Shown: positions 6,260-64,000 of the stretch, piece by piece
How the letters are laid out: each line of letters opens with the position of its first letter
Numbering within the stretch: the stretch's first letter is position 1
Program-made: the position numbers and the translations under genes
Notes under the pieces: model-generated
Database searches by the model: none
The model's input: the letters and a program-made list of their open reading frames with translations, nothing else
What the model was told of the DNA's origin: nothing
Assembly (NCBI RefSeq): GCF_006345805.1
Contig: NC_042998.1
Span: 149,606,001 to 149,670,000, forward strand
Direction of reading: 5' to 3'
Length of the DNA: 64,000 nt
From: Octopus sinensis
Lineage: Eukaryota

Positions 6260-6450
6260 GTCGAACCGACGATGGAAGCGCCACACAGTCGCTTGATATG
6301 CTAGAGACGGCAGCCAACTCTCCTTCCAGTATCCCCCTGTCGTCTTGAAAAGAACATAACACAGACAGTGCTTGGATACATGGATATAAAGATGGGATGG
6401 TTACATCTGGAACACAATTGACCCTAGGTTCTCGGAACCAGAGCTAGTTT
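6260..6450 (+). mobile_element. Probable SINE 3' half ending in (AAC)n
   Basis: Resembles a common octopus repeat from memory (ccacacagtcgcttga..ataaagatgggatggt..aaacaacaac); no second copy in the window. Confidence 0.35.
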
Positions 6451-7059
6451 AAAAACAACAACGACGGCAACAACAACAAGAGCAAAAATTATATCGAAAA
6501 CTAGTAACTCTACCATCGTCACAACAATCATCTGGAAAAGATGCAATATCTAATTGATCAGTTTTACAGCCATCACTACCACCACCACCACCACCATCAC
6601 TTACAACAACAACAAAAACCCTAACCCTAACCACTGTCAGCACTACCAATACGACGACGGCCACCACCACCACCACCACTGCCAGCACCATCGGCAACAA
6701 AACCACATTTATTACCAAACAAAAAACAACCACCACCAACACTGACATCGCCATCACCACCATTATTACCGCACATAAACACCACCAACACCGCCATCAA
6801 TACCACGACCACCATAACCACCATCAATACCACAGTTTATATTGCTTCCACTTGTCGCCAATTAATTACAGCTTACAGGTTTTTTTTTCAAACCGCCACA
6901 ACCAGCACCAGCACCACCAGCACCCCCACCAGCACCGCCAACACCCCCACCAGCACTGACACCACCACCACTACTACTACTAGGATGATAACGAGGATTT
7001 CTTACATTATCATAGTAATAATAATATTTATCAAGCATCGAAACTACACTTATCTCTTC

Positions 7060-8036
7060 CTTAATATATATGTAAGTACACACACACACACATATATGTA
7101 TATACATACTTATATATACATGTATATGTTTGTATATATATATACATAACTAAAGACATATATGTTTGTGTGTATATATATGTATGTATATATATATATA
7201 CATACATACATACACATACGTTTATGGATACAGCAGTACGTGTATGTGTGCGCTTATATATATACATGTACATATACATTTATATATATATATATATATA
7301 ATATATATATATTATATATATTATATATATATATATGTATATATGTATACATGCATATATATATATATATATATGTACATATATGTATATATATATTATA
7401 TATATACATATATATATTATATATATATATATATACATATGTATATACACACACGTAAAGATATATACTGTATAGAAATATATATATTCACATATGTGCA
7501 TTGGCTACGTCTATATATATATATATTATATAATATATATATAGTAATATATATGTTGTGCACATACGTGTGTGTGTGTACATACGTGTGTGTGCGTACG
7601 AACATACATATGCACACACATATAAGTACACATACATATATACACACATCCATCTAAACGCACATACGTATACACATAAGTCTCATACATATGTCACACG
7701 AACTCCAACTACTTTATTCTTCTCTCACTGGTCTTTCTCTCTTACACGCTATCCTGTCTAACTACCCTTCTCTCTCTCCCTATCTGTCTCTATCTCTAAT
7801 TTTCTCTTTATCTGTTTTCCTCTCTCCCACACTCTCACAGTTCAATCAACCTTTTTCTCTCTCCCTCACTCTTTCTCTCTCCAATTTCTCTATCGATTAC
7901 ACATAATTGACCTATTTTTAATAAACCACTTTCCAACCGAGCTTGCCGTTCATTTCCTACCCTAACTTCCAACTCATTACTTCTCTGCCTCTCTTTCTCT
8001 CTCTCTCTCTCACACACATGTAGACGCATACATATT

Positions 8037-10649: not shown

Positions 10650-11010
10650 CTTCTTTTACTCTTTTACTTGTTTCAGTCATTTGACTGTGTCCATGCTGGA
10701 TCACCGCCTTTAGTCGAGCAAATCGACCCCAGGACTTGTTCTTTGTAAGCCTAGTACTTATTCTATCGGTCTCTTTTGCCGAACCGCTAATGAACGGGTA
10801 CGTAAACACACCAGCATCGGTTGTCAAGTGATGTTGGGGGGACAAACACAGACACACATATACACATGCACATATATATTTATATATACGACGGGCTTCT
10901 TTCAGTTTCCGTCTACCAAATCCACTCACAAGGCTTTGGTCGGCCCGAGGCTATAGTAGAAATCACTTGCCCATGTAGCTGGTAAGCAAGCTACTTACCA
11001 CGCAGCCACT
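10650..11010 (-). mobile_element. SINE S1, head partly deleted
   Basis: High identity to the 29519-29915 copy over core and tail. Confidence 0.9.
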
Positions 11011-17210: not shown

Positions 17211-17749
17211 TAATCCCGTTGTTAGGAAGGTGAATTGATTTGTGGGAAGATTTCTCTCCAGTAAAAATATACCCCGCTAGTTATCACACTCGTTGCTCGT
17301 TAATTTGTAAATGAGTTAATTAAATGCAAAGTGAAATATAACCAGCGTGTGTTTTTGTTGGTTGAATGTCTTTCTGCAAATACAGAAGTGAGATCACGTA
17401 CAGGTCTGATTGACGTTGGGTAACCAAGGATTCTGTAATAATGAATTAAGTGTAGTAGTGTAGTTGGCATTACTGCTTAAAGCCAACAATTTGTGTGATG
17501 TGTGTGTAGGCATGCATGCTTGTATGTATGTATGTATGTATGTATGTATTTATGTATGTATGCACGTACGTATGTATGTTTGCATGCATGTTCTAAATGC
17601 CAGTAGACCCTTCTCCAAGACTCCGAGCCTTGTGCCGAAATTTGGAACCAATTTAGAGTAACTTTTGACCGGGTACCTACTTGGCAGTAAGGCTGTGAAG
17701 AAAAGAATCTTGTTTTAACAATTATCCTTTAAATCTTAAGAAATTGTTT

Positions 17750-17880
17750 CAGATTTTTATCATCCAAGATATTGCGATCATTTGCAGCGTATAAATTAAG
17801 GATTTGCATTCTCTCCCGGAGATCCCAAGTTCACCCATACTTTGCTTCACACGGGTTGGTATGTCTCCTATTGCTCCAAT
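17750..17880 (-). mobile_element. R4/Dong-clade C-terminal remnant
   Basis: IIGAIGDIPTRVKQSMGELGI resembles the VIGALG.IPK.L...LE.LGI tail seen at 22290-22360. Confidence 0.45.
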
Positions 17881-18084
17881 GATGTATGTATGTATGTATG
17901 TATGTATGTATGTATGTATGTATGTATGTATGTATGTATGTATGTTCTCATGTATGTATGTATCTATGTATGTACGTATGTATGTATGTATGTATGTATG
18001 TATGTATGTATGTATATATGTGTGTTTGCGTGTTTGTGTGTGTGTACATTTGATGCGTGTATGAATGCCTGCTTTCCCTCTCAT

Positions 18085-18400
18085 CTGTCGATGCTAGTCC
18101 TCGCATGCTTCACTAAACACACTTCAACTCACCGAGAGATCCGACAGCAACTTTCTGAATTAATTTTTCCCCTCCTGTCCAAACATTTTATAGAGGTATG
18201 GTCTCCAAGAGTTTTACATCTTTTTGAAGTCATAAATGAATGATGGACCTTCAGTTGAAACCAAAGATGAACGTGTTGTTTTCTCGAGAATATGACTAGT
18301 ATCTCCATTAATGACGTCACTGCCCTCAAAATCCTTTTATATAACCACGTGTCGAGCTTTTCATATATTTTTATATTGATTCCGCTGAGGTCAGCTTTGC
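18085..18400 (-). mobile_element. RTE-clade LINE 3' remnant, degraded
   Basis: KIYEKLDTWLYKRILR...KRCKTLG..GKINSE resembles the RTE 'KKLEAFEMW.YRRILRI..LGH..GKI.G' pattern. Confidence 0.5.
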
Positions 18401-25799: not shown

Positions 25800-26150
25800 T
25801 AATACAGTATGAACTCTCCTTTTACAACATGACAACATCCCACAATTCCTTTCCAGTACCAGTGCTGATTCCAACATCTGGGATACTTGACTGATCTATA
25901 GAAGAAATCCACTCCATAGACATTAAAACCCGCAAGATCCCAACATCAAATGGAAATCTCCATAGAAATAGTGATATTCACAGGCTCCACCTAAGAAGAA
26001 CTAAAGGAAGTAGGGGCTTCAGATCAGTGCAAACAGCCGTTGAAAGTTGCATGGTTATTCTCAGACAGCACTTGCTAAACAACAGTAGCAAAAATAAGTA
26101 CATTATCTTAGAGTGAAAAGTGTTGGAAATGAGCTCCTCAGGAAGAGAAT
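25800..26150 (+). mobile_element. R4/Dong-clade RT-thumb region fragment
   Basis: PVPVLIPTSGILD.SIEEIHSIDIKTRKI...GNLHRNSDIHRLHLRR..GSRGF matches the family pattern 'LDRKTRK..HPKADVDRLY.PR..GGRGL'. Confidence 0.75.
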
Positions 26151-26154
26151 ACTT

Positions 26155-27360
26155 CCGTGTAACGTCCTTCCTTTTTGTTTCAAATATTTCAGTTTTTGCT
26201 AGAACAATGGGACGTGGAAAGGGCCTTAGCGATGAAGAAAAGTCTGTCATCATCAATGAAAATGCTAAAGGCATCTCTCTTCATGTCATTGCGGAGAAGT
26301 TAGGTCGTCGTGTGGACACGGTTAGACGATTCTTGAAGGACCCTTCGCCTAGGAAGAAACAATCCGATTCTAGGACCGCCAAGACTGTGACAGCTAGGGA
26401 TTTAAGAAATATTGGCAACAAGTTACGTAGGAAATCTAGAGAAACAAACTCCGGATTTCCCCATGCTCCGAAAAGCACCAGAAATGGCATCCTCGAGACC
26501 ATGGCTTCTCTGCAAGAACCCCTGAATCTTCCTCCTTCAAGCCCCCCCCCCGTCACAGGAGTTTGAGGCTTCAATGGGCCCAAAAGTACATGGCATTAGA
26601 CATGAGTCGTGTTCTGTTCACTGACGAAACCAGGGCGACCCTTAACGGACCTGACGGTTGGGAAAATGGTTGGGTCTGTTTTGGAGATGAATCTCACCAA
26701 CGTTTACGACGTCGACAACAGGGTGGAGGAGTCATGTTGTGGACAGATTATCATTAGGGACAGATTTGTAGGCCTAGTCAGGGTGCCTGAAGGGGTGACC
26801 GCAGACGCTTACTGCGTCTGAAGGAGGTCTTTAACTCCTGGATAGATGACATACCGCTGTCACTTCTAAGGAATCTCGTATTCATGCATGACAACGCTCT
26901 CTCCCACTCTGCTAGGACCAGCCAAACATTAATAGGGTCTTACGGCATACAAGATGAAAGGTTGGTGGTGTGGCCGCCAGTATTTCCTGATCTCAACCCT
27001 ATCAAAAATTTTTGCTCCATCATGAAACAAGATGTTTATGCCGATGGGCAGCAATTCACGTCGAAAAATATCTTATGGGCGCCCATCAAAGCAGCAGCAG
27101 AGTCAATCCAGCATGCTACAACTAAAAGATTGACAGATTTCATAACTAATAGGAAATGGCACCCGTGTAGCTAAATAATTCATTACGTCAATAAATGTTA
27201 TAATACTATTTTGGTTTTCTGTTAAATATATACTCAATGTATGCTTTATATGTATCATTACCCTTCATTTCTGAAAAAAAAAAACAGTCTAGATGGACTA
27301 ACAGTGTACTTCACCCAAAAACTGAAGAATCTGAAATAAAAAAGAAAGGACGTTACACTG
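26155..27360 (+). mobile_element. Tc1-related DD37E (TRT-like) DNA transposon, near full length, with a pseudogenised transposase (ATG at 26207)
   Basis: ~45-bp imperfect TIRs (ccgtgtaacgtccttcc.. / ..agaaaggacgttacactg); MGRGKGLSDEEK..VLFTDETRATLNGPDGW..QQGGGVMLW..FMHDNA..WPPVFPDLNPIK, with 37 residues between D2 and the E position (mutated to K); frameshifts present. Confidence 0.88.
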
Positions 27361-29518: not shown

Positions 29519-29915
29519 AGGCGCAGGAGTGGCTGTGTGGTAAGTAGCTTACTTACCAACCACATGGTTCCGGGTTTCCGGGTACAGTCCCACTGCGTGG
29601 CACCTTGGGCAAAGGTCTTCTACTATAGCCTCGGACCGACTAAAGCCTTGTGAGTGGATTTGGTAGATAGAAACTGAAAGAAGTCCGTCGTATGTATGTG
29701 TGTGTATATGTTTGTGTGTCTGTGTTTGTCCCCCCCAACATTGCTTGACAACCGATGGTGAAGTGTTTACGCCCCGTAACGTAGCGGTTCGGCAAAAAAG
29801 AAAGATAGAATATGTACTAGGATTCTAAAGAATAGGTCCTGGGGTCGATTTACTCAACTAAAGGCGGTGCTCCAGAATGACTGCAGTCAAACGACTGAAA
29901 CAAGTAAAAGAGAAT
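29519..29915 (+). mobile_element. SINE S1, full length
   Basis: tRNA-like head (gtggctgtgtggtaag..ggttccggg..cagtccc), CORE-like accttgggcaa, internal (TG)n, tail ggcggtgctccag..gactgaaacaagtaaaag. Confidence 0.92.
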
Positions 29916-35553: not shown

Positions 35554-35599
<46 letters not shown>

Positions 35600-35723
35600 A
35601 CAATCAAGGAACGGCCATAATAGGCCATTCACTCCACTAGAAAAGACAGCCAAAGCTTCAAATCAACCGCAAATAAAAATCAATTCCGTAAACCAGGAGA
35701 AAATTTAAAAACATTTACCCTGT

Positions 35724-35830
35724 ATTTCTTATACGATGCACCGTTTCATCTGCTGTTTAATGGTAAACTAACCTGATTAAATTAAATCAAGCCAATCTTC
35801 CATAGGCCCTCAGATTCTTCAGTAAGAAAT
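35724..35830 (-). ncRNA. Type I hammerhead ribozyme motif (copy 1, left arm)
   Basis: Minus strand: ATTTCTTA-CTGAAGA-ATCTG..CAGAT-GAAA-CGG TGCA TCG-TA-TAAGAAAT. Confidence 0.8.
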
Positions 35831-35997
35831 AGCCAAGTCGGAACAATATTTCACGAGGCATTTCCGACCCTGCCAAGGCAATATATTTATTTGCTGCCGA
35901 TAAATTGGCGCGAGTGCGATGATTTGAAAATTTTAGGTCAGATATTGCCTTGGCAGGGTCGAAAATGCCTCGTGAAAATATCTGTTCCGACTTGGCT

Positions 35998-36103
35998 ATT
36001 TCTTACTGAAGAATCTGAGGGCCTATGGAAGATTGGCTTGATTTAATTTAATCAGGTTAGTTACCATTAAACGGCAGATGAAACGGTGCATCGTATAAGA
36101 AAT
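35998..36103 (+). ncRNA. Type I hammerhead ribozyme motif (copy 1, right arm)
   Basis: Stem I 35998-36005/36096-36103; CTGAAGA 36006-12; stem II ATCTG 36013-17/CAGAT 36075-79; GAAA 36080-83; stem III CGG/TCG; predicted GUA cleavage after 36095. Confidence 0.82.
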
Positions 36104-36266
36104 TACAGGGTAAATGTTTTTTAAATTTTCTCCTGGTTTACGGAATTGATTTTTATTTGCGTTGAAGTTTGGCTGTTATTTCTAGTGGTGAATGGCCTAT
36201 TATGGCCGTTCCTTGATTGTTGATGTTGAACTTAAAAATGGTCTATGACTATTTAATTTTTTCCCA

Positions 36267-36390
36267 CTAGGCCGCTGGTGGCAAAAAAATTCTACAAAAT
36301 TTTTTTGCCACCCTATATTGATTAATTATATATATATATATATATATATATGTCTGCCTGCATTCATTAAGAGTTTTATTATCGCCACCA
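36267..36390 (-). mobile_element. Helitron-like 3' terminus
   Basis: Perfect 15-bp hairpin at 36277-36312; on the minus strand it is followed by agcggc-CTAG|T; a 42-bp segment is shared with 34366-34407. Confidence 0.5.
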
Positions 36391-37818: not shown

Positions 37819-37851
37819 TACATACATGTATATATATAATATATATATAAT

Positions 37852-37894
<43 letters not shown>

Positions 37895-38069
37895 CACATT
37901 ATATGTATTAAAGCGCTACTAATCGTTTCATATGTTCAGAAATCTCCAACATATTCTTCAGGCGTAAACCAGATATAATGATGGAGTACTTTTTTGTCGA
38001 ATTTTGAATCACTGTAAATTACACAAACGCGCGCACGCACATGTATATATATGTGAGTGCATATGTATG

Positions 38070-38124
<55 letters not shown>

Positions 38125-38129
<5 letters not shown>

Positions 38130-39030
38130 GCTGAGGACAACAACATGCAATTTAATGCAGGTAAGTTCCAGGCCCTGCGCTACTGGCACACAAAGGTAAA
38201 CGACGTGCAGACTGGATATACTGGCCCAGGAAGAATTGCAATCCCTGAGTAAAAATCAGTGCGTGACCTGGGAATTGACATGAGCAATGATGCATCTTTC
38301 CAAATGCATATTGCTAATCTGGTGATAAAATGCAGACGACTAGCTGGATGGATTCTCCGAACCTTCAGAACAAGAGAGAAGGAGACACTGATGATCCTAT
38401 GGAAAACATTCGTCCTCAGCCGCTTGGACTACTGCGCCCAACTGTGGTCACCACACAATATAATACTAACAGCCGAACTCGAAGCAATTCAGAGAAACTA
38501 CACAAAGAAAATCGTCTCAATGCAAAATATCAGCTATTGGGAAAGACTGAAGGTATTAAACCTCTTCTCTCTAGAGCGGAGGCGGGAGAGATATGCGGTG
38601 ATATACATCTGGAAAATCCTGGAGGGTCTTGTCCCAAACTTTGGCATTCAAAGTTACCCCAACCGCAGAACGGGGCGCCACTGCATGGTGCCAAGGATTC
38701 CAACATCACCATCAAAATACAGGTCCAGATACTGCAACAGCTTGGGTTTCAGAGGACCACAGCTCTTTAACATCCTCCCTAAATGCCTGAGAGACTTATA
38801 TGTTGTGGATGTGGGTTTCTTTAAAACTAAACTGGATCTCTTCTTGTCGGGATCCCAGATGAACCTACCCCACGACAGGAGACGCGGATGCGGGCAGCAG
38901 CATCGAACCCCCTTGTTGATCAAGTGCCACGTATCAGAGGTGGATTCACAAATTAGGGTAGCTCATTCAGCGGTGGTGCCCCAGCATGGCCGCGGCCTTC
39001 GGGCTAAAACATTTTTAAGGATTTAAGGAT
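38125..39030 (+). mobile_element. CR1-clade LINE, 5'-truncated 3' end
   Basis: WAEDNNMQFNAGK..VRDLGI..GWILRTF..RLDYC.QLWSP..LEAIQR.YTK..YWERLK.L.L.SLERRR.R..LFN.LP. Confidence 0.95.
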
Positions 39031-40464: not shown

Positions 40465-40875
40465 TAGTTTCACTCATTTGACTGCGGCCATGCTGGGGCA
40501 TCGCCATGAAGAAGTTTTATTCGAATGGATCAGCCCCAGCACTTTTTTTCTTTCTAAAGACTGGTACTTATTCTACTGAGTTCTTTTGAAGGTACATAAA
40601 CAAACCAACGCCGGTTGTCAATCAGTGTTGGGAGACAAACACAGACGCAAAGAATCACATATACATACATGCATGCATACATACATACATGCATACATAA
40701 ACACACGCGCACACATATACGATAGACTTCATTCAGTTTCCATCTACCGAATCTACTCACAAGGCTTTGGTCGGCCCGAGGCTATAGTTGAAGACACATG
40801 CCCAAGGTGCCACGCAGTGAGACTGAACCCGAAACCTTGTCACTGAGAGACAAACTTCTCAACATACAGCCTCAC
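40465..40875 (-). mobile_element. SINE S1
   Basis: Core caaggctttggtcggcccgaggctatag..cccaaggtgccacgcagt and tail gactgcggccatgctgg. Confidence 0.88.
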
Positions 40876-41900: not shown

Positions 41901-42004
41901 ACAAGCCAACACAGAAACCGTAACTAGGAACATTCTTCAAGGACCTTACAATGTATAGTTTCTGTATTCTGGAATGCTGACAGATAAATAAACCATATAT
42001 CTTT

Positions 42005-42210
42005 CATCTTTTAATTGTTTCAGTCATTGAATTGCAGCCATGCTGGAGTACTGCCTTGAAGGGTTTAGATGAACAAACTCCCGTGTATAGTTTTTAAAGT
42101 CTGGTACTTATTTGATTGCTCTTTTTGCTGAATCGGTCAGTTATGGGGATGTAAAAACATCAAAACCAGTTGTCGAGTGGTGGTGGAAGACAACTACAAT
42201 CACACACACA
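42005..42210 (-). mobile_element. SINE S1 tail fragment
   Basis: ttgtttcagtcatt..gcagccatgctggagtactgcc. Confidence 0.65.
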
Positions 42211-42247
42211 CATATATGTATGGAGAGAGGGATTATATAAATATATA

Positions 42248-42304
<57 letters not shown>

Positions 42305-42434
42305 TCACAATCAAGGAACCGCCCATAATAGGCCATTCCCCCCTATACTAGAAATAACAGCCAAAAGCTTTAACAACCGCAAAATAACATCAATTCCGTA
42401 AACCAGGAGAAAATTTAAAAACATTTACCCTGTA

Positions 42435-42542
42435 ATTTCTTATACGATGCACACCGTTTCATCTACTGTTTAATGGTAAACTACCTGATTAAATTAAATC
42501 AAGCCAATCTACCATAGGCCCTTAGATTCATCAGTAAGAAAT
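42435..42542 (-). ncRNA. Type I hammerhead ribozyme motif (copy 2, left arm)
   Basis: Minus strand: ATTTCTTA-CTGATGA-ATCTA..TAGAT-GAAA-CGG TGTGCA TCG-TA-TAAGAAAT (2-nt insertion confined to loop III). Confidence 0.8.
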
Positions 42543-42732
42543 AGCCAAGTCGGAACAGATATTTTTCACGAGGCATTCCCGTCCGTGCCTCGGCAATATC
42601 TGACCTAAAATTTTCAAATCATCGCACTCGCGCGAGTGCGAGTGCGAGTGCGATGATTTGAAAATTTTAGGTCAGATATTGCCGAGGCAGGGACGGGAAT
42701 GCCTCGTGAAAAATATCTGTTCCGACTTGGCT

Positions 42733-42839
42733 ATTTCTTACTGATGAATCTAAGGGCCTATGGTAGATTGGCTTGATTTAATTTAATCAGGTTAGTTTAC
42801 CATTAAACAGTAGATGAAACGGTGCATCGTATAAGAAAT
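42733..42839 (+). ncRNA. Type I hammerhead ribozyme motif (copy 2, right arm)
   Basis: Stem I 42733-40/42832-39; CTGATGA 42741-47; stem II ATCTA 42748-52/TAGAT 42811-15; GAAA 42816-19; stem III 42820-22/42827-29; predicted cleavage after A42831. Confidence 0.85.
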
Positions 42840-43011
42840 TACAGGGTAAATGTTTTTAAATTTTCTCCTGGTTTACGGAATTGATGTTATTTTGCGGTTA
42901 AAGCTTTTGGCTGTTATTTCTAGTGGGTGAATGGCCTATTATGGCCGTTCCTTGATTGTGATGATATATATATATATATATAGAACAGTAAAACAATTTA
43001 TAGAATATATA

Positions 43012-43435
43012 AGCGTGGTTGTGTGGTAAGAAGCTTGCTTCCCAAACACAGTCCCTCTGCATGGCACCTTGGGCAAATGTCTTGTACTATAACCTCGGGC
43101 CGACCAAAGCCTTGTGAGGGGATTCGGTAAACGGAAACTGAATGAAGCCTGTCGTATATAAATATATATATAGATGTGTGCGTGCGTGTGTGTGTGTGCG
43201 TGTGTATTTTTGTGTGTGAGAGTGAGTGTGTATGTGTATTTCTACGTATGTTTGTGTTTGTCTCCCCACATCGCTAGAAAACCGATGTTGGTGTGTTTAT
43301 GTCACCGTAACCTAGCGGTTCGGCATAAGATACCGATTAAATAAGTACTAGGCTGAAATGAATAAATCCTGTGGTCGATTTCTTCGACTAGAGGCGGTAC
43401 TCCAGCATGGCCGCAGTCAAATATCTGAAACAAGT
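43012..43435 (+). mobile_element. SINE S1
   Basis: Head, core, internal (TG)n and tail ggcggtactccagcatggccgcagtc..ctgaaacaagt. Confidence 0.9.
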
Positions 43436-43479
43436 ATATATATATATATATATATAAATCAATAAATGATGGGGTTGTG

Positions 43480-45389: not shown

Positions 45390-47040
45390 GATTCAGCTCA
45401 GAGCTGCGGCCATGCTGATGCACCGCCGTTTCATGCTACACTGTTATTACGAAGAACCTCGTCTAATATGTGGCACTTGGTGAAGAATGGAGTTTGATAT
45501 AGCTACTCTCATTTGCACATCTTGTCGTGAGGTAGGTTCATCTGGGACTCTCAACAGGAAGATGTCCAGCTTTGATTTAAAAACCGCTACATCTACTTTG
45601 TGCAAGTTCCCCAGACTCTTTGGGAGAATATTAAAAAGCTGTGGGCCCTTGAAACCCAGGCTGTTGCAGAAGCTGGTCTTAAAGCGTGATGGCATTGCTG
45701 GGATCTTTGGCACTTTGCAGTGTCGTCCCGTTCTAGCATTGGTGTAGCTTACAATGCCAAAATTTGGCACAATTCCTTCCAGGATCTTCCAGACATATAT
45801 TACTGCATACCTCTCCCGTCTTCTCTCCAGGGAGTAGAGTCTTAGCTGTTTCAACCTTTCCCAGTAGCTGAGCTGTTAATTTTACACTGGTGGGTGACCA
45901 TAGCTGTGAGCAGTAATCCAGGCGGCTGTGGACGAATGTCCACCAGAGAACCATCATGGTTTCCTTATCTCTGGTTCTGAATGTTCTTAGGATCCACCCA
46001 GCCAGTTGTCTGCACTTTGTCGCCATCCTGGTAATGTGCACTTGGAAAGAGGTATCATCACTCATGTCGATACCCAGGTCCCTCACAGACTTAGGCTCTG
46101 GGATTGAAATTCCCTGTGGACCGGTGTATCCTGTAAGTTTAACATTCAGTTTTGGATGCTGGTAGCGCAGGGCCTGGAATTTTTCAGCATTAAACTGCAT
46201 ATTATTATCGTCAGCCCATCTGTAGATTGAGTCCAACTCCTGCTGCAGGTGTGCAACATCGCTGGGGTTCTGTATTTTCTGTGAGACTTTCGTATCGTCT
46301 GCATAGCTGGCCAGAGTGGCTATCCAGGTATTTGAGGGCATATCTGAGAGGGCCACTATAAAAAGCAGTGGTCCCAAGACAGTGCCCTGTGGAACACCGC
46401 TCACTATTTATGTGTTCATAGAGGTGAGTCCATTAACCACTACTGCCTGACTCCTAACTTTCAGGAAGTCATGTAACCACACTCCAAGTTTTCCAGCTAC
46501 GCAGAGGTCACGCAGTTTGTGGCATATCATACCATGATCCACCTTGTCAAAAGCTTTTGCAAAATCAAGGTAGATTACGTCCACATTTGATGTCTTGAGT
46601 AACTGCCTCAACACCCAGTCATAATGTCATAAGAACTGGGTCAGACAGCTCCTACCTGGTCGAAAACCATGCTGGGTATCACTCAGCAAGTTATTTTCCT
46701 CAAGGAATGCGATTAGTTTCTTTCTGACTATCCGTTCCATGACTTTGCTGACGTGTGAAGTCAGAGAGATAGGCCTATAGTTTTTGGCGTCTGCTCTACT
46801 TCCCCCTTTATGTATTGGGCATATTATTCCCTCCTTCAGCTTGCTTGGCAGTTTGCCATTCGCAAGAAAGCTCTGGAAGAGAATCTTGAGGGGTTTTGCC
46901 AGGGCATGCTTACATGCTTTGAGGAGGATGGCTGGGAAACCATCTGGACCAGCAGCTGAGTTTGTGTCCACTTCATCTATGGCTAGTAGGACATCTTTTT
47001 CGCTAATGTGAATACATTCTATTGTAACCGCCTCGCTGGT
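45390..47040 (-). mobile_element. CR1-clade LINE (RT domain to 3' end, with internal deletions); same family as 38125-39030
   Basis: AAGPDG..NYRPISLTS..QHGFRPGRSC..YLDFAKAFDKVDH..SGVPQGTVLGPLLF..YADDTK..SLERRRERY. Confidence 0.96.
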
Positions 47041-62194: not shown

Positions 62195-64000
62195 TTCTTA
62201 TAATAATAATAATGAAATTATTGTATACAGTGCTCAGGTGCACCACAACTTGTCAGAAAGTGCATATAAAGTACATGCAGCAATGTAGAAATGTCTGGAA
62301 AGTGAACATGCTTGTGTGTGTATGGAGGGGAGAAAATCAAGTGTAGTGTTGGCGAATCTCAGGAAGCATGGAAGTTTTGAAGGATGCAGTGCTCCGACAA
62401 CTAACAACCGATGCCGGCAGTTTGTTCCACTCTTCAGTAACTCTCAGCGTGAAAAAATGTTTCCTGAAGTCATGGGAGCTGTGCTGTTTTCTTACTTTGT
62501 AAATATGTCCACGGGTGTTAGATGGGTGGAGTTTAAGAGGTGCTCAGAGTTATTGTTTGTGCGATGGTTGATAATTTATGGGTGTCTGCCAAGTCAGCTG
62601 CCAGACGTCGGAGTTTTAATGTGTCCATGCCCAGGGAAGTAAGGCGTTCAGGATATGGCAAATGCCTGATGGAGGGTATTCTTTTGGTTGCACGTCGCTG
62701 AACAGCTTCTAGACGATTGATGTCCTGGGCAAGATAAGGGTTCCAGACCGGTGATGCAAATTCCAGGTGAGGTCTTACCATAGCTATATAAAGCCGCAGA
62801 TAGATAGCCGGAGAGCGGCTCACAAAGGATTTGGTGAGTGATGCCAAGACACCCTCAGCCTTCTTGACAATTTTAGCGATGTGTTTTGTCCAGTGCAAAT
62901 AACTGTCGACAATAACACCCAGGTCACGTTCACTTGAAGACTTTTTGAGACTAGTGTTGTGGAGGGAGTAGGTGGACGCTGGGTTTCTCCTCCCAAAATG
63001 CATGGTGGTACATTTGTCCACAGCCAGCTTCAGTTGCCAGTCCATGATCCACTGCTGCATTGTGTCCAGGTCTGCTTGCAATAGAGATCCATAGTGTACA
63101 GGATTTGACCTCTTTATTTGGAGGTACAGCTTGATGTCATCTGCATATTTCAGCACTGTGACATTCTTTAAGTTGGCATCTATGTCATTAACATATGCAA
63201 CAAATAAAAGAGGGCCAAGAACAGATCCCTGCGGCACACCAGATGTCATCTCATAGGGCGAAGAGTGCTGTCCTAGAACTGTGACAACCTCTTTCCGGCC
63301 GAAAATAAAGGACTTTAACCAGTTATAGTTATAGAGTTCGTCTCTTACACCCAACGCAGAAGAAAGCTTCACCATAAGTCTTGTGTGGGCACAGAGTTAA
63401 AAGCCTTAGCAAAGTCCAGGTAAACAACATCCACCCAGGATCCGCGATCAGTGATTGGGTAACGTCCTCAAGAAACTCGATGAGTTGATTACAGCAGCTG
63501 GAGTTAGGAATAAATCCGAATTGTGACGGCTGGCTGAGGCTGTGAGACTTCCAGAAGTTCCAGAGGGTTTCTCTGATACAGGATTCCATCAGTTTGGCGA
63601 TGCAGCTAGTAAGACTGACGGGGCGATAGTTGACAGGCGATGTGCGGTCGCCTTTTTTTAACAGAGGGATGACACTGGCAGTTTTCCACTGTTCTGGAGT
63701 AACACCATTGTCGAGACAGAATTGGAAGAATAGAGAAAGTTGGCATAGAAGAAAGTACCCACTGCGTTTGAGAAGTAGGTATGTAACACCATTGAGACCA
63801 GAGAGAGGCATAATTGCGTTTATTCTTTAGGTGGCGTTGCAGCATTGCTGGTGTAAATTGCATAGAAGATATAGAGTCCGATGTCAGTGGTGATGATGAT
63901 GGAACATTTTGGTCTTCGACAGTAAAGATGCCGGCATAGCATCCAGCAATGATTTCTGCACATTCTTCGGGATTGCCAGTAATCTGTCCTGTGGGGATTG
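62195..64000 (-). mobile_element. CR1-clade LINE (second family), RT to 3' end, running off the window edge
   Basis: NYRPVSLTS..SQFGFIPNSSC..SGVPQGSVLGPLLF..KYADDIK..ERDLGVIVD..VRPHLEFASPVWNP..LEAVQRRATK; (ATT)n tail. Confidence 0.96.

Follow-up and report, generated by a model that had tools for sequence, protein, structure and literature searches.

Introduction

Metazoan non-LTR (long terminal repeat) retrozymes are units of ~170–400 nt without an open reading frame (ORF) that carry a type I hammerhead ribozyme (HHR) with a stable helix III, and they lie head to tail, such that two same-strand HHRs free a monomer for circularisation (Cervera & de la Pena 2020, PMC7229834). In mussels these units measure 350–390 bp and their type I HHRs are without the canonical loop-loop nucleotides (PMC7229834), and a stable helix III has been reported for invertebrate type I HHRs (PMC7761336). 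Penelope-like elements (PLEs) carry HHRs in pseudo-LTRs that can be direct or inverted; an inverted 5′-truncated copy often adjoins their 5′ end, and they show a bias for microsatellites, including (TA)n (PMC8557442). The HHRs of animal PLEs are usually minimal and dimeric, with helix III absent or of 1–2 bp (PMC4209133, PMC8557442), and it has been argued that animal retrozymes are PLE-derived (bioRxiv 10.64898/2026.07.22.740005). A total of 31 PLE families with recent activity are reported from Octopus vulgaris (PMC13282606), and we found no description of hammerhead-bearing mobile elements in cephalopods in the literature. Here we describe a palindromic element with a type I hammerhead motif in each of its arms, copy A of what we call family 1, in a 64,000-nt stretch of the Octopus sinensis genome (assembly GCF_006345805.1, contig NC_042998.1, positions 149,606,001 to 149,670,000 of the forward strand), hereafter the window, whose own numbering we use throughout unless another locus is named. 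The element had been picked out by a model that saw just the letters and a list of their ORFs (the sequence-only reading) and took it for a small, self-cleaving, retro-mobilised palindrome.

Results

A palindromic element carries a hammerhead motif in each arm

Aligned with its own reverse complement by repeat finding and blastn, copy A is 94.7% identical across 676 aligned columns, and its symmetric unit (Table 1) begins with TCATCAC and ends with GTGATGA. Identity between the arms is 98.8% at the substitution level; their alignment has 4 mismatches and 12 gap columns. The sequence-only reading had described a spacer-less, ORF-less palindrome of 665 bp inserted in (TA)n. The palindrome and its (TA)n setting hold, but the span 42301–42965 takes in one flanking TA base per side, and the arms are not spacer-less, being parted by 12 nt at the centre that consist of two extra GAGTGC units without a mirror image. 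The lack of an ORF was confirmed, the longest stop-free stretch in copy A being 46 aa. The unit, that is, a single arm of ~320–330 nt, falls within the size range of the non-LTR retrozymes. The left-hand (TA)n array of copy A forms the tail region of a repeat resembling a short interspersed nuclear element (SINE) at ~42000–42216, and this flank matches SINE-like copies elsewhere in the window as well as in the sampled Octopus loci.

Each arm of copy A carries a complete type I hammerhead motif. Specifically, the right arm forms an 8-bp helix I (42733–42740 with 42832–42839), followed by the core CUGAUGA (42741–42747) and a 5-bp helix II (42748–42752 with 42811–42815) that encloses 57 nt, among them a 19-bp extension (42760–42778 with 42785–42803). 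The GAA of G12–A14 stands at 42816–42818, helix III (42819–42830) has 4 bp and a palindromic UGCA tetraloop, and the cleavage triplet GUA occupies 42829–42831, with the cut predicted after A17 at 42831. In the left arm, C3 is at 42534 and G12 at 42460, and the cut is predicted after A17 at 42443; compared with that of the right arm, this motif has 2 nt inserted in loop 3 and lacks 1 nt of the helix II extension. Both motifs run from the centre to the terminus and so face outward. The parts listed in the sequence-only reading, the GUA triplet included, are each present where it had placed them, and the left arm indeed carries the same motif on the minus strand, as it had also claimed.

Every hammerhead call made here rests on a custom type I descriptor (core, GAAA, A15.1–U16.1, H17 and three helices, with a helix II interior of at most 90 nt), not on an independent curated model. 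This descriptor matches both arms of copy A, bearing out the proposed type, and in the whole window it returns the two arms of copy A, the two arms of a second copy (copy B) and one weak extra match. All four arms have the core and GAA, the core reading CUGAUGA in copy A and CUGAAGA in copy B, and all four have the GUA triplet, which conforms to N-U-H, together with the A15.1–U16.1 pair; GUA is found in some natural hammerheads (PMC1636495). Three helices surround the core, helix I being open-ended, and 98.7% of the cells in the four-arm alignment are paired. The centroid fold of 42725–42850 is the hammerhead secondary structure, and a fold constrained to the hammerhead lies within 0.1–1.9 kcal/mol of the minimum free energy (MFE) in all four arms (1.9 for the right and 0.1 for the left arm of copy A).

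A second copy keeps the motif at an unrelated locus

Copy B is also palindromic, with arms that are 96.6% identical, except that 25–30 nt at the inner end of its left arm are swapped for unrelated sequence. Its flanks are unrelated to those of copy A, making the two independent loci. In the right arm of copy B, C3 is at 36006 and the cut is predicted after 36095; in the left arm, these positions are 35822 and 35732. The sole core change between the copies is U to A at N7, the free core position, and the fifth pair of helix II changes from A-U to G-C in both arms of copy B, a compensatory substitution. The remaining hammerhead changes are peripheral, affecting the helix II extension, loop 3 and the last pair of helix I. 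Core and stems are thus conserved between genomic copies, with changes confined to places where hammerheads tolerate them. In the four-arm alignment the hammerhead stretch is the best-conserved part of the arm, with 10 variable columns of 109, against 33 of 137 in the outer arm and 25 of 74 in the inner arm.

The hairpins of the hammerhead also differ between strands. The structure has 40 pairs, of which 7 are G·U, while A·C pairs are absent, and the MFE is −33 to −39 kcal/mol for the sense and −18 to −21 kcal/mol for the antisense strand (−38.6 vs −20.7 for the right arm of copy A). This G·U-only asymmetry suggests that a single RNA strand has been under selection, and its one-sidedness is unlike a hairpin that decays at random at the DNA level. 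Arm identity within a copy (98.8% in A and 96.6% in B) exceeds that between copies (91–95.5%), as expected if a single template made both arms at insertion, and the centre junctions of the two copies differ.

To the right of copy B, 100 unique bp (36224–36326) separate its end from the next array, (TA)12, and contain a 13-bp hairpin, GGTGGCAAAAAAA ... TTTTTTTGCCACC. This segment may represent a further small insertion or else a ‘tail’ like that found at one end of PLE insertions.

The motif is unlikely to be due to chance

When the window was dinucleotide-shuffled 300 times, the strict form of the descriptor gave 0 matches and the loose form a mean of 0.06 per shuffle. First-order Markov sequence, 100 Mb in all, yielded strict matches at a rate of 2e-8 per nt, none of which reached the observed quality of 8, 5 and 4 bp in the three helices. 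Extrapolated from the Markov rate, about one motif of such quality is expected in random sequence of whole-genome size, and a single motif would for that reason be no proof in a whole-genome scan. As a control on real DNA, in which hairpins and repeats are kept, we ran 539 scrambled cores as decoys on 126 kb comprising the window and three further Octopus loci. The decoys gave a loose mean of 0.12 (maximum 5) and a strict mean of 0.002, whereas the true core gave 8 loose matches at 5 loci and 4 strict ones, counts reached by 0 of the 539 decoys. A chance origin of the motif is therefore very unlikely.

Hammerhead-like motifs recur beside (TA)n in other Octopus DNA

The further loci (L001–L003) total 62 kb and surround copies of long interspersed nuclear elements (LINEs) in three Octopus assemblies. 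Applied to them, the descriptor found two more hammerhead-like loci, L001 in O. vulgaris and L002 in O. sinensis. The L001 element is unrelated in sequence to family 1 but is again a palindrome, with arms 99% complementary around a 13-nt loop and one outward-facing type I hammerhead-like motif per arm. These motifs have a GUC triplet, a helix II of 4 bp plus a ~10-bp hairpin, and a helix III of 4 bp with a palindromic GCGC tetraloop, and the two arms differ by a compensatory change at the fourth pair of helix III, U-A against G-C. The outer ends of the element run into the start of the next unit, with periods of ~401 and 430 bp, and so form a partial tandem; despite this wrap-around there is one HHR per arm. 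Its left end adjoins (GA)n(TA)n. Directly to the right of the palindrome, at 7411–7850 of L001, we also observed tandem units of ~94 bp that stem from a portion of the flanking SINE-like repeat. A retrozyme-style wrap-around was considered for family 1 as well, where the inner and outer ends of the arms match at 9 of 13 positions by eye; we judged this not significant.

The L002 insert is non-palindromic. Its hammerhead-like motif has C3 at 18070, a GUC triplet and a predicted cut after 18140, with a palindromic CAUG loop closing its 1-bp helix III, and the cleavage site stands 51 nt from the 3′ (TA)n. The weak extra match in the window has a CUGAAGA core, a helix II of 7 bp, a helix III of 2 bp, a GUA triplet and a helix I of just 3 bp. 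It lies in a 169-bp stretch running from (TA)33 (37829–37891) to (AT)34 (38061–38127), with its cleavage site 26 nt from (TA)n; about 0.06 chance matches are expected per window, and it could be a genuine, if degenerate, representative of this class. For comparison, the HHR sites of copy A are 133–141 nt from (TA)n, and the probability that (TA)n lies at most 140 nt downstream of a random position and strand is 0.089. Together these loci offer evidence, at the level of sequence, that Octopus genomes hold a population of (TA)n-associated short elements with type I hammerheads that standard models miss.

Family 1 itself did not recur in the 62 kb from three Octopus assemblies, and an nhmmer profile built from the four arms and run on the window plus these 62 kb, which come from three Octopus species, found just those four arms. 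An exact 23-mer and an exact 21-mer of the family were absent from viral, metagenome and prokaryotic contigs save for a chance bacterial match (L004), and searches of protein collections with the spurious ORFs of the element gave no candidates, the sole match being a chance one to a discoidin repeat (P0121).

Genomic neighbourhood

Pfam searches of 20 ORFs from the window detected LINE reverse transcriptase (RT) fragments and a Tc3 helix-turn-helix (HTH) domain only. The RT fragments are of LINE type, not PLE; the proteins most like one window LINE RT ORF come from Octopus bimaculoides, O. vulgaris and O. sinensis, and a second LINE RT query against protein collections returned no Octopus protein. 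The linkage to GIY-YIG or RT ORFs raised in the sequence-only reading is not seen in the window, where the RTs belong to LINEs. Many recently active Dong-R4 LINEs are reported from O. vulgaris (PMC13282606). One of the window LINE copies (38004–39026) sits exactly between two (TA)n arrays, tying at least one LINE lineage to (TA)n as well. Two SINE-like families recur in the window, often tail to tail over a (CA)n/(TA)n microsatellite. The window contains 74 (TA)n arrays of at least 8 units in its 64 kb, and these arrays seem to act as nested insertion sites.

Table 1. Positions of family 1 elements, hammerhead motifs and neighbouring repeats. Coordinates refer to the window except for L001 and L002.
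Feature	Coordinates	Strand	Evidence or remark
(TA)n array left of copy A	42234–42301	.	Tandem Repeats Finder (TRF), 34.5 copies ((TA)34)
Copy A, palindromic element of family 1, 663 bp	42302–42964	.	Self reverse-complement match, inverted repeats
Left arm, copy A	42302–42631	-	Sense from centre to left terminus
Central 12 nt, two extra GAGTGC units, unmirrored	42632–42643	.	Inverted-repeat spacing and sequence
Right arm, copy A	42644–42964	+	Sense from centre to right terminus
(TA)n right of copy A, ~(TA)9	42965–42982	.	Sequence
Type I hammerhead motif, copy A right arm	42733–42839	+	Descriptor, helices 8, 5, 4 bp
Type I hammerhead motif, copy A left arm	42435–42542	-	Descriptor, helices 8, 5, 5 bp
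(TA)21 left of copy B	35555–35596	.	TRF and sequence
Copy B, 627 bp, ~87% identical to copy A	35597–36223	.	blastn, alignment
Hammerhead motif, copy B right arm, core CUGAAGA	35998–36103	+	Descriptor, helices 8, 5, 4 bp
Hammerhead motif, copy B left arm	35723–35831	-	Descriptor, helices 9, 5, 4 bp
Weak hammerhead-like motif	37917–37961	-	Descriptor (loose)
L001 palindromic element	6392–7409; O. vulgaris GCA_951406725.2, CATOCA020000001.1, ~7793911–7794928		Descriptor
L002 insert, ~510 bp, non-palindromic	17681–18190; O. sinensis CM016860.1, ~206138098–206138607		Between two (TA)n arrays
5′-truncated LINE copy (RVT_1)	38004–39026	+	Pfam
5′-truncated LINE copy (RVT_1)	45447–46404	-	Pfam
5′-truncated LINE copy (RVT_1)	62307–63811	-	Pfam
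Degenerate Tc1/mariner element, Tc3-transposase HTH	26120–26566	+	Pfam, E=8.9e-09
SINE-like repeat copies, first set	42000–42216, 10652–10862, 29705–29911, 43246–43436		
SINE-like repeat copies, second set	43010–43160, 10862–10973, 29584–29696, 40715–40825		

Discussion

We favour a reading of the element as a head-to-head (5′-to-5′) pair of a ~320-nt, ORF-less, hammerhead-bearing unit of retrozyme/PLE type inserted in (TA)n, which, judged from its anatomy, stands about as good a chance of being right as of being wrong. The class we propose for it, with confidence that is no more than even, is that of the animal non-autonomous hammerhead retroelements, meaning non-LTR retrozymes or PLE pseudo-LTR/3′-end sequences. 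The recurrence of short hammerhead elements in (TA)n in Octopus would fit such a retro-mobilised, retrozyme/PLE-like class. Beyond the anatomy of the sequence, we infer catalysis, an RNA intermediate and a partner enzyme.

The octopus units resemble the metazoan non-LTR retrozymes in being ORF-less and of the same size range, in their type I motif and stable helix III, and, in the L001 family, in a partial tandem wrap-around. They differ in standing head to head with one sense hammerhead per strand, an arrangement from which no circular RNA can be inferred, rather than head to tail with two HHRs on the same strand, and also in their unusually long helix II and an A-U pair at 10.1–11.1. With PLEs they have in common an HHR near the 3′ end or in terminal repeats, the inverted arrangement and the (TA)n target; unlike PLEs, the octopus element has no RT or GIY-YIG ORF in or near it, and helix III has 4 bp where animal PLE hammerheads usually have two at most. 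In their stable helix III and unit size, the octopus motifs resemble invertebrate retrozyme HHRs more closely than the minimal PLE ones. The sequence-only reading had known of no description of the bidirectional form, and this suggestion of novelty was overstated, as inverted HHR-bearing pseudo-LTRs have been described for PLEs (PMC8557442); a head-to-head HHR-bearing element is a variant of that known inverted PLE-type arrangement and not wholly new.

In the mechanism we propose, the unit would be copied via RNA, and the 3′ end of this RNA would be joined to nicked (TA)n by target-primed reverse transcription, with the RT supplied in trans, most likely by a PLE and possibly by a microsatellite-targeting LINE. 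As (TA)n is identical on both strands, both nicks can prime, and priming from both of them, or alternatively a snap-back of the complementary DNA (cDNA), would let two copies meet at their 5′ ends. Each arm would then be a cDNA with its 3′ end joined to the target, for which the outward orientation is the one expected, and the palindrome would be a by-product of insertion rather than a device. The (TA)n setting, the coexistence of single, partial-tandem and head-to-head forms, the likeness of the arms within a copy and the differing junctions together point to target-primed insertion.

The hammerhead would cut unit-sense transcripts after A17 (42831 on the plus strand, 42443 on the minus strand), as in the processing of retrozyme and PLE RNA, and its action would be confined to RNAs initiated within the element or made from non-palindromic master copies. 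The full palindrome, once transcribed, is predicted to form a hairpin of ~330 bp at −564.6 kcal/mol, in agreement with the sequence-only reading. The outward orientation is poor for a ribozyme in read-through RNA, because the sense HHR lies in the second arm and would be locked in this hairpin. It was accordingly an overstatement to expect an active-looking hammerhead in transcripts from either direction, since the ~330-bp hairpin would bury the sense HHR of the second arm.

Several observations weigh against this retrozyme/PLE-type reading. Copies A and B share both pivot and ends and neither is 5′-truncated, features that suit a DNA transposon no less well. No target-site duplication is discernible, copy A lying inside (TA)n and copy B having TA on its left and TG on its right. 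The hammerhead sits in the middle of the arm and neither arm end coincides with the cleavage site. Neither the window nor the sampled loci contain a head-to-tail tandem or direct copy of family 1, and no PLE ORF or GIY-YIG-like motif was detected in the window or in L001–L003. The arms show no 3′-end similarity to the three LINE copies of the window. Family 1 is represented by two copies, or four arms, in the window plus 62 kb of Octopus DNA, and its lone compensatory pair, which was equalled in 81 of 500 shuffles, is anecdotal because it compares two lineages only.

The motif itself also departs from the canonical hammerhead. The 10.1–11.1 pair is A-U in all four arms where G-C is expected, the G10.1–C11.1 pair being highly conserved in canonical HHRs (PMC4209133); A-U is likewise found at this position in the L001 motifs and in the weak motif at 37.9 kb of the window. 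The window, segments of 851 and 131 nt, and the L001 and L002 motifs were searched with Rfam, both at the gathering score and at E<=10, and the hammerhead models of Rfam 15 matched no motif here, even at E<=10 on segments of ~110–131 nt. The sole Rfam matches were to long-hairpin microRNA (miRNA) precursor families, below threshold, and reflect the hairpin alone. The 57 nt within helix II may account for the missing hammerhead match. What the sequence-only reading called a textbook type I hammerhead is thus a complete type I motif, and the word textbook fails on its A-U pair at 10.1–11.1, its helix II insert and the silence of the Rfam models.

The alternative that survives best is a foldback-type miniature inverted-repeat transposable element (MITE) whose whole arms would serve as terminal inverted repeats for Tc1/mariner-type cut-and-paste into TA, and which would carry, or derive from, a hammerhead-bearing sequence; we consider this unlikely, though well short of negligible. 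It would readily explain a small, ORF-less, full-length palindrome with terminal inverted repeats, with identical termini and pivot at two unrelated loci, without 5′ truncation and in TA-rich targets, and the confinement of Rfam resemblances to sub-threshold long-hairpin miRNA precursor families agrees with it as well. A Tc3-type transposase remnant is present in the window, and 73 Tc1-mariner families with recent activity are reported from O. vulgaris (PMC13282606). Foldback elements and palindromic MITEs of the Made1/mir-548 type (PMC1784062) are likewise short, ORF-less, fully self-complementary and found in TA-rich targets, and read-through of either kind of element would yield a long hairpin. 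Unlike them, the octopus element has a conserved, strand-asymmetric ribozyme motif, and neither a target-site duplication nor a matching autonomous transposon was found for it in the window. The palindrome termini occur nowhere else in the window beyond copies A and B and do not match the ends of the Tc3-like remnant, a weak test given that this one degenerate remnant was all there was to compare. Cut-and-paste into TA also sits poorly with the TG to the right of copy B, which is followed by 100 unique bp before any TA, and the G·U-only asymmetry points to selection on an RNA strand instead of DNA symmetry. Further evidence against a MITE comes from the other loci: the unequal arms of L001, wrapping into the next unit, are a tandem or rolling-template signature rather than that of a transposase, and the L002 unit is non-palindromic, yet it shows the same geometry of HHR and (TA)n.

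A self-complementary ‘foldback retrozyme’, in which the palindrome itself multiplies, both strands would give the same ribozyme-plus-hairpin RNA and a single hammerhead would serve both polarities, seems doubtful to us; it stays open because copies A and B share pivot and termini. Its RNA would double as a long double-stranded RNA (dsRNA) substrate for Dicer or ADAR, a corollary that we regard as similarly improbable. Avsunviroids and viroid-like satellite RNAs carry hammerheads in both polarities and their RNA is highly self-paired. Like them, the octopus element offers a hammerhead on either strand, and its RNA would be highly self-paired; the two-strand property here follows trivially from the palindromy of the DNA, and, unlike avsunviroids, the element gives no evidence of RNA–RNA replication or of circles.

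Less probable again is that the motif is a chance look-alike, or an inactive relic in a hairpin-rich repeat, with no ribozyme function. The absence of an Rfam hammerhead match, the non-canonical A10.1–U11.1 pair with its 57-nt helix II insert, the one motif of like quality expected in genome-sized random sequence and covariation that is anecdotal across two evolutionary lineages are all compatible with it. Set against these are the controls, in which 0 of 300 shuffles and 0 of 539 real-DNA decoys reach the observed counts, and the pattern of conservation: no other part of the arm is as well conserved as the motif, its one core change falls on N7 and one of its helix changes is compensatory, and three more hammerhead-like motifs of the same geometry occur in 126 kb. 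Finally, near-perfect palindromes can stem from long reads folded back through a missed adapter, but we reject such an assembly artefact as a very remote prospect, since one window holds two copies with the same internal architecture, different flanks and private mutations, the palindrome is bounded at 663 bp by non-palindromic flanks, and an analogous element stands in the assembly of another species, O. vulgaris.

If these findings are borne out, hammerhead-bearing mobile elements would extend to cephalopods. It would also mean that the standard Rfam models overlook a set of Octopus hammerheads in which the 10.1–11.1 pair is A-U, helix II is long, and helix III has 4 bp and a palindromic tetraloop, and published animal hammerhead censuses may then be undercounts. 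The single, partially tandem and head-to-head palindromic forms seen in (TA)n would be natural cases of retrozyme/PLE-type insertion, and these forms bear on the still-unsettled mechanism by which PLEs and retrozymes integrate. The palindromes would, moreover, be ready-made sources of long dsRNA in cephalopods, animals known for their heavy RNA editing.

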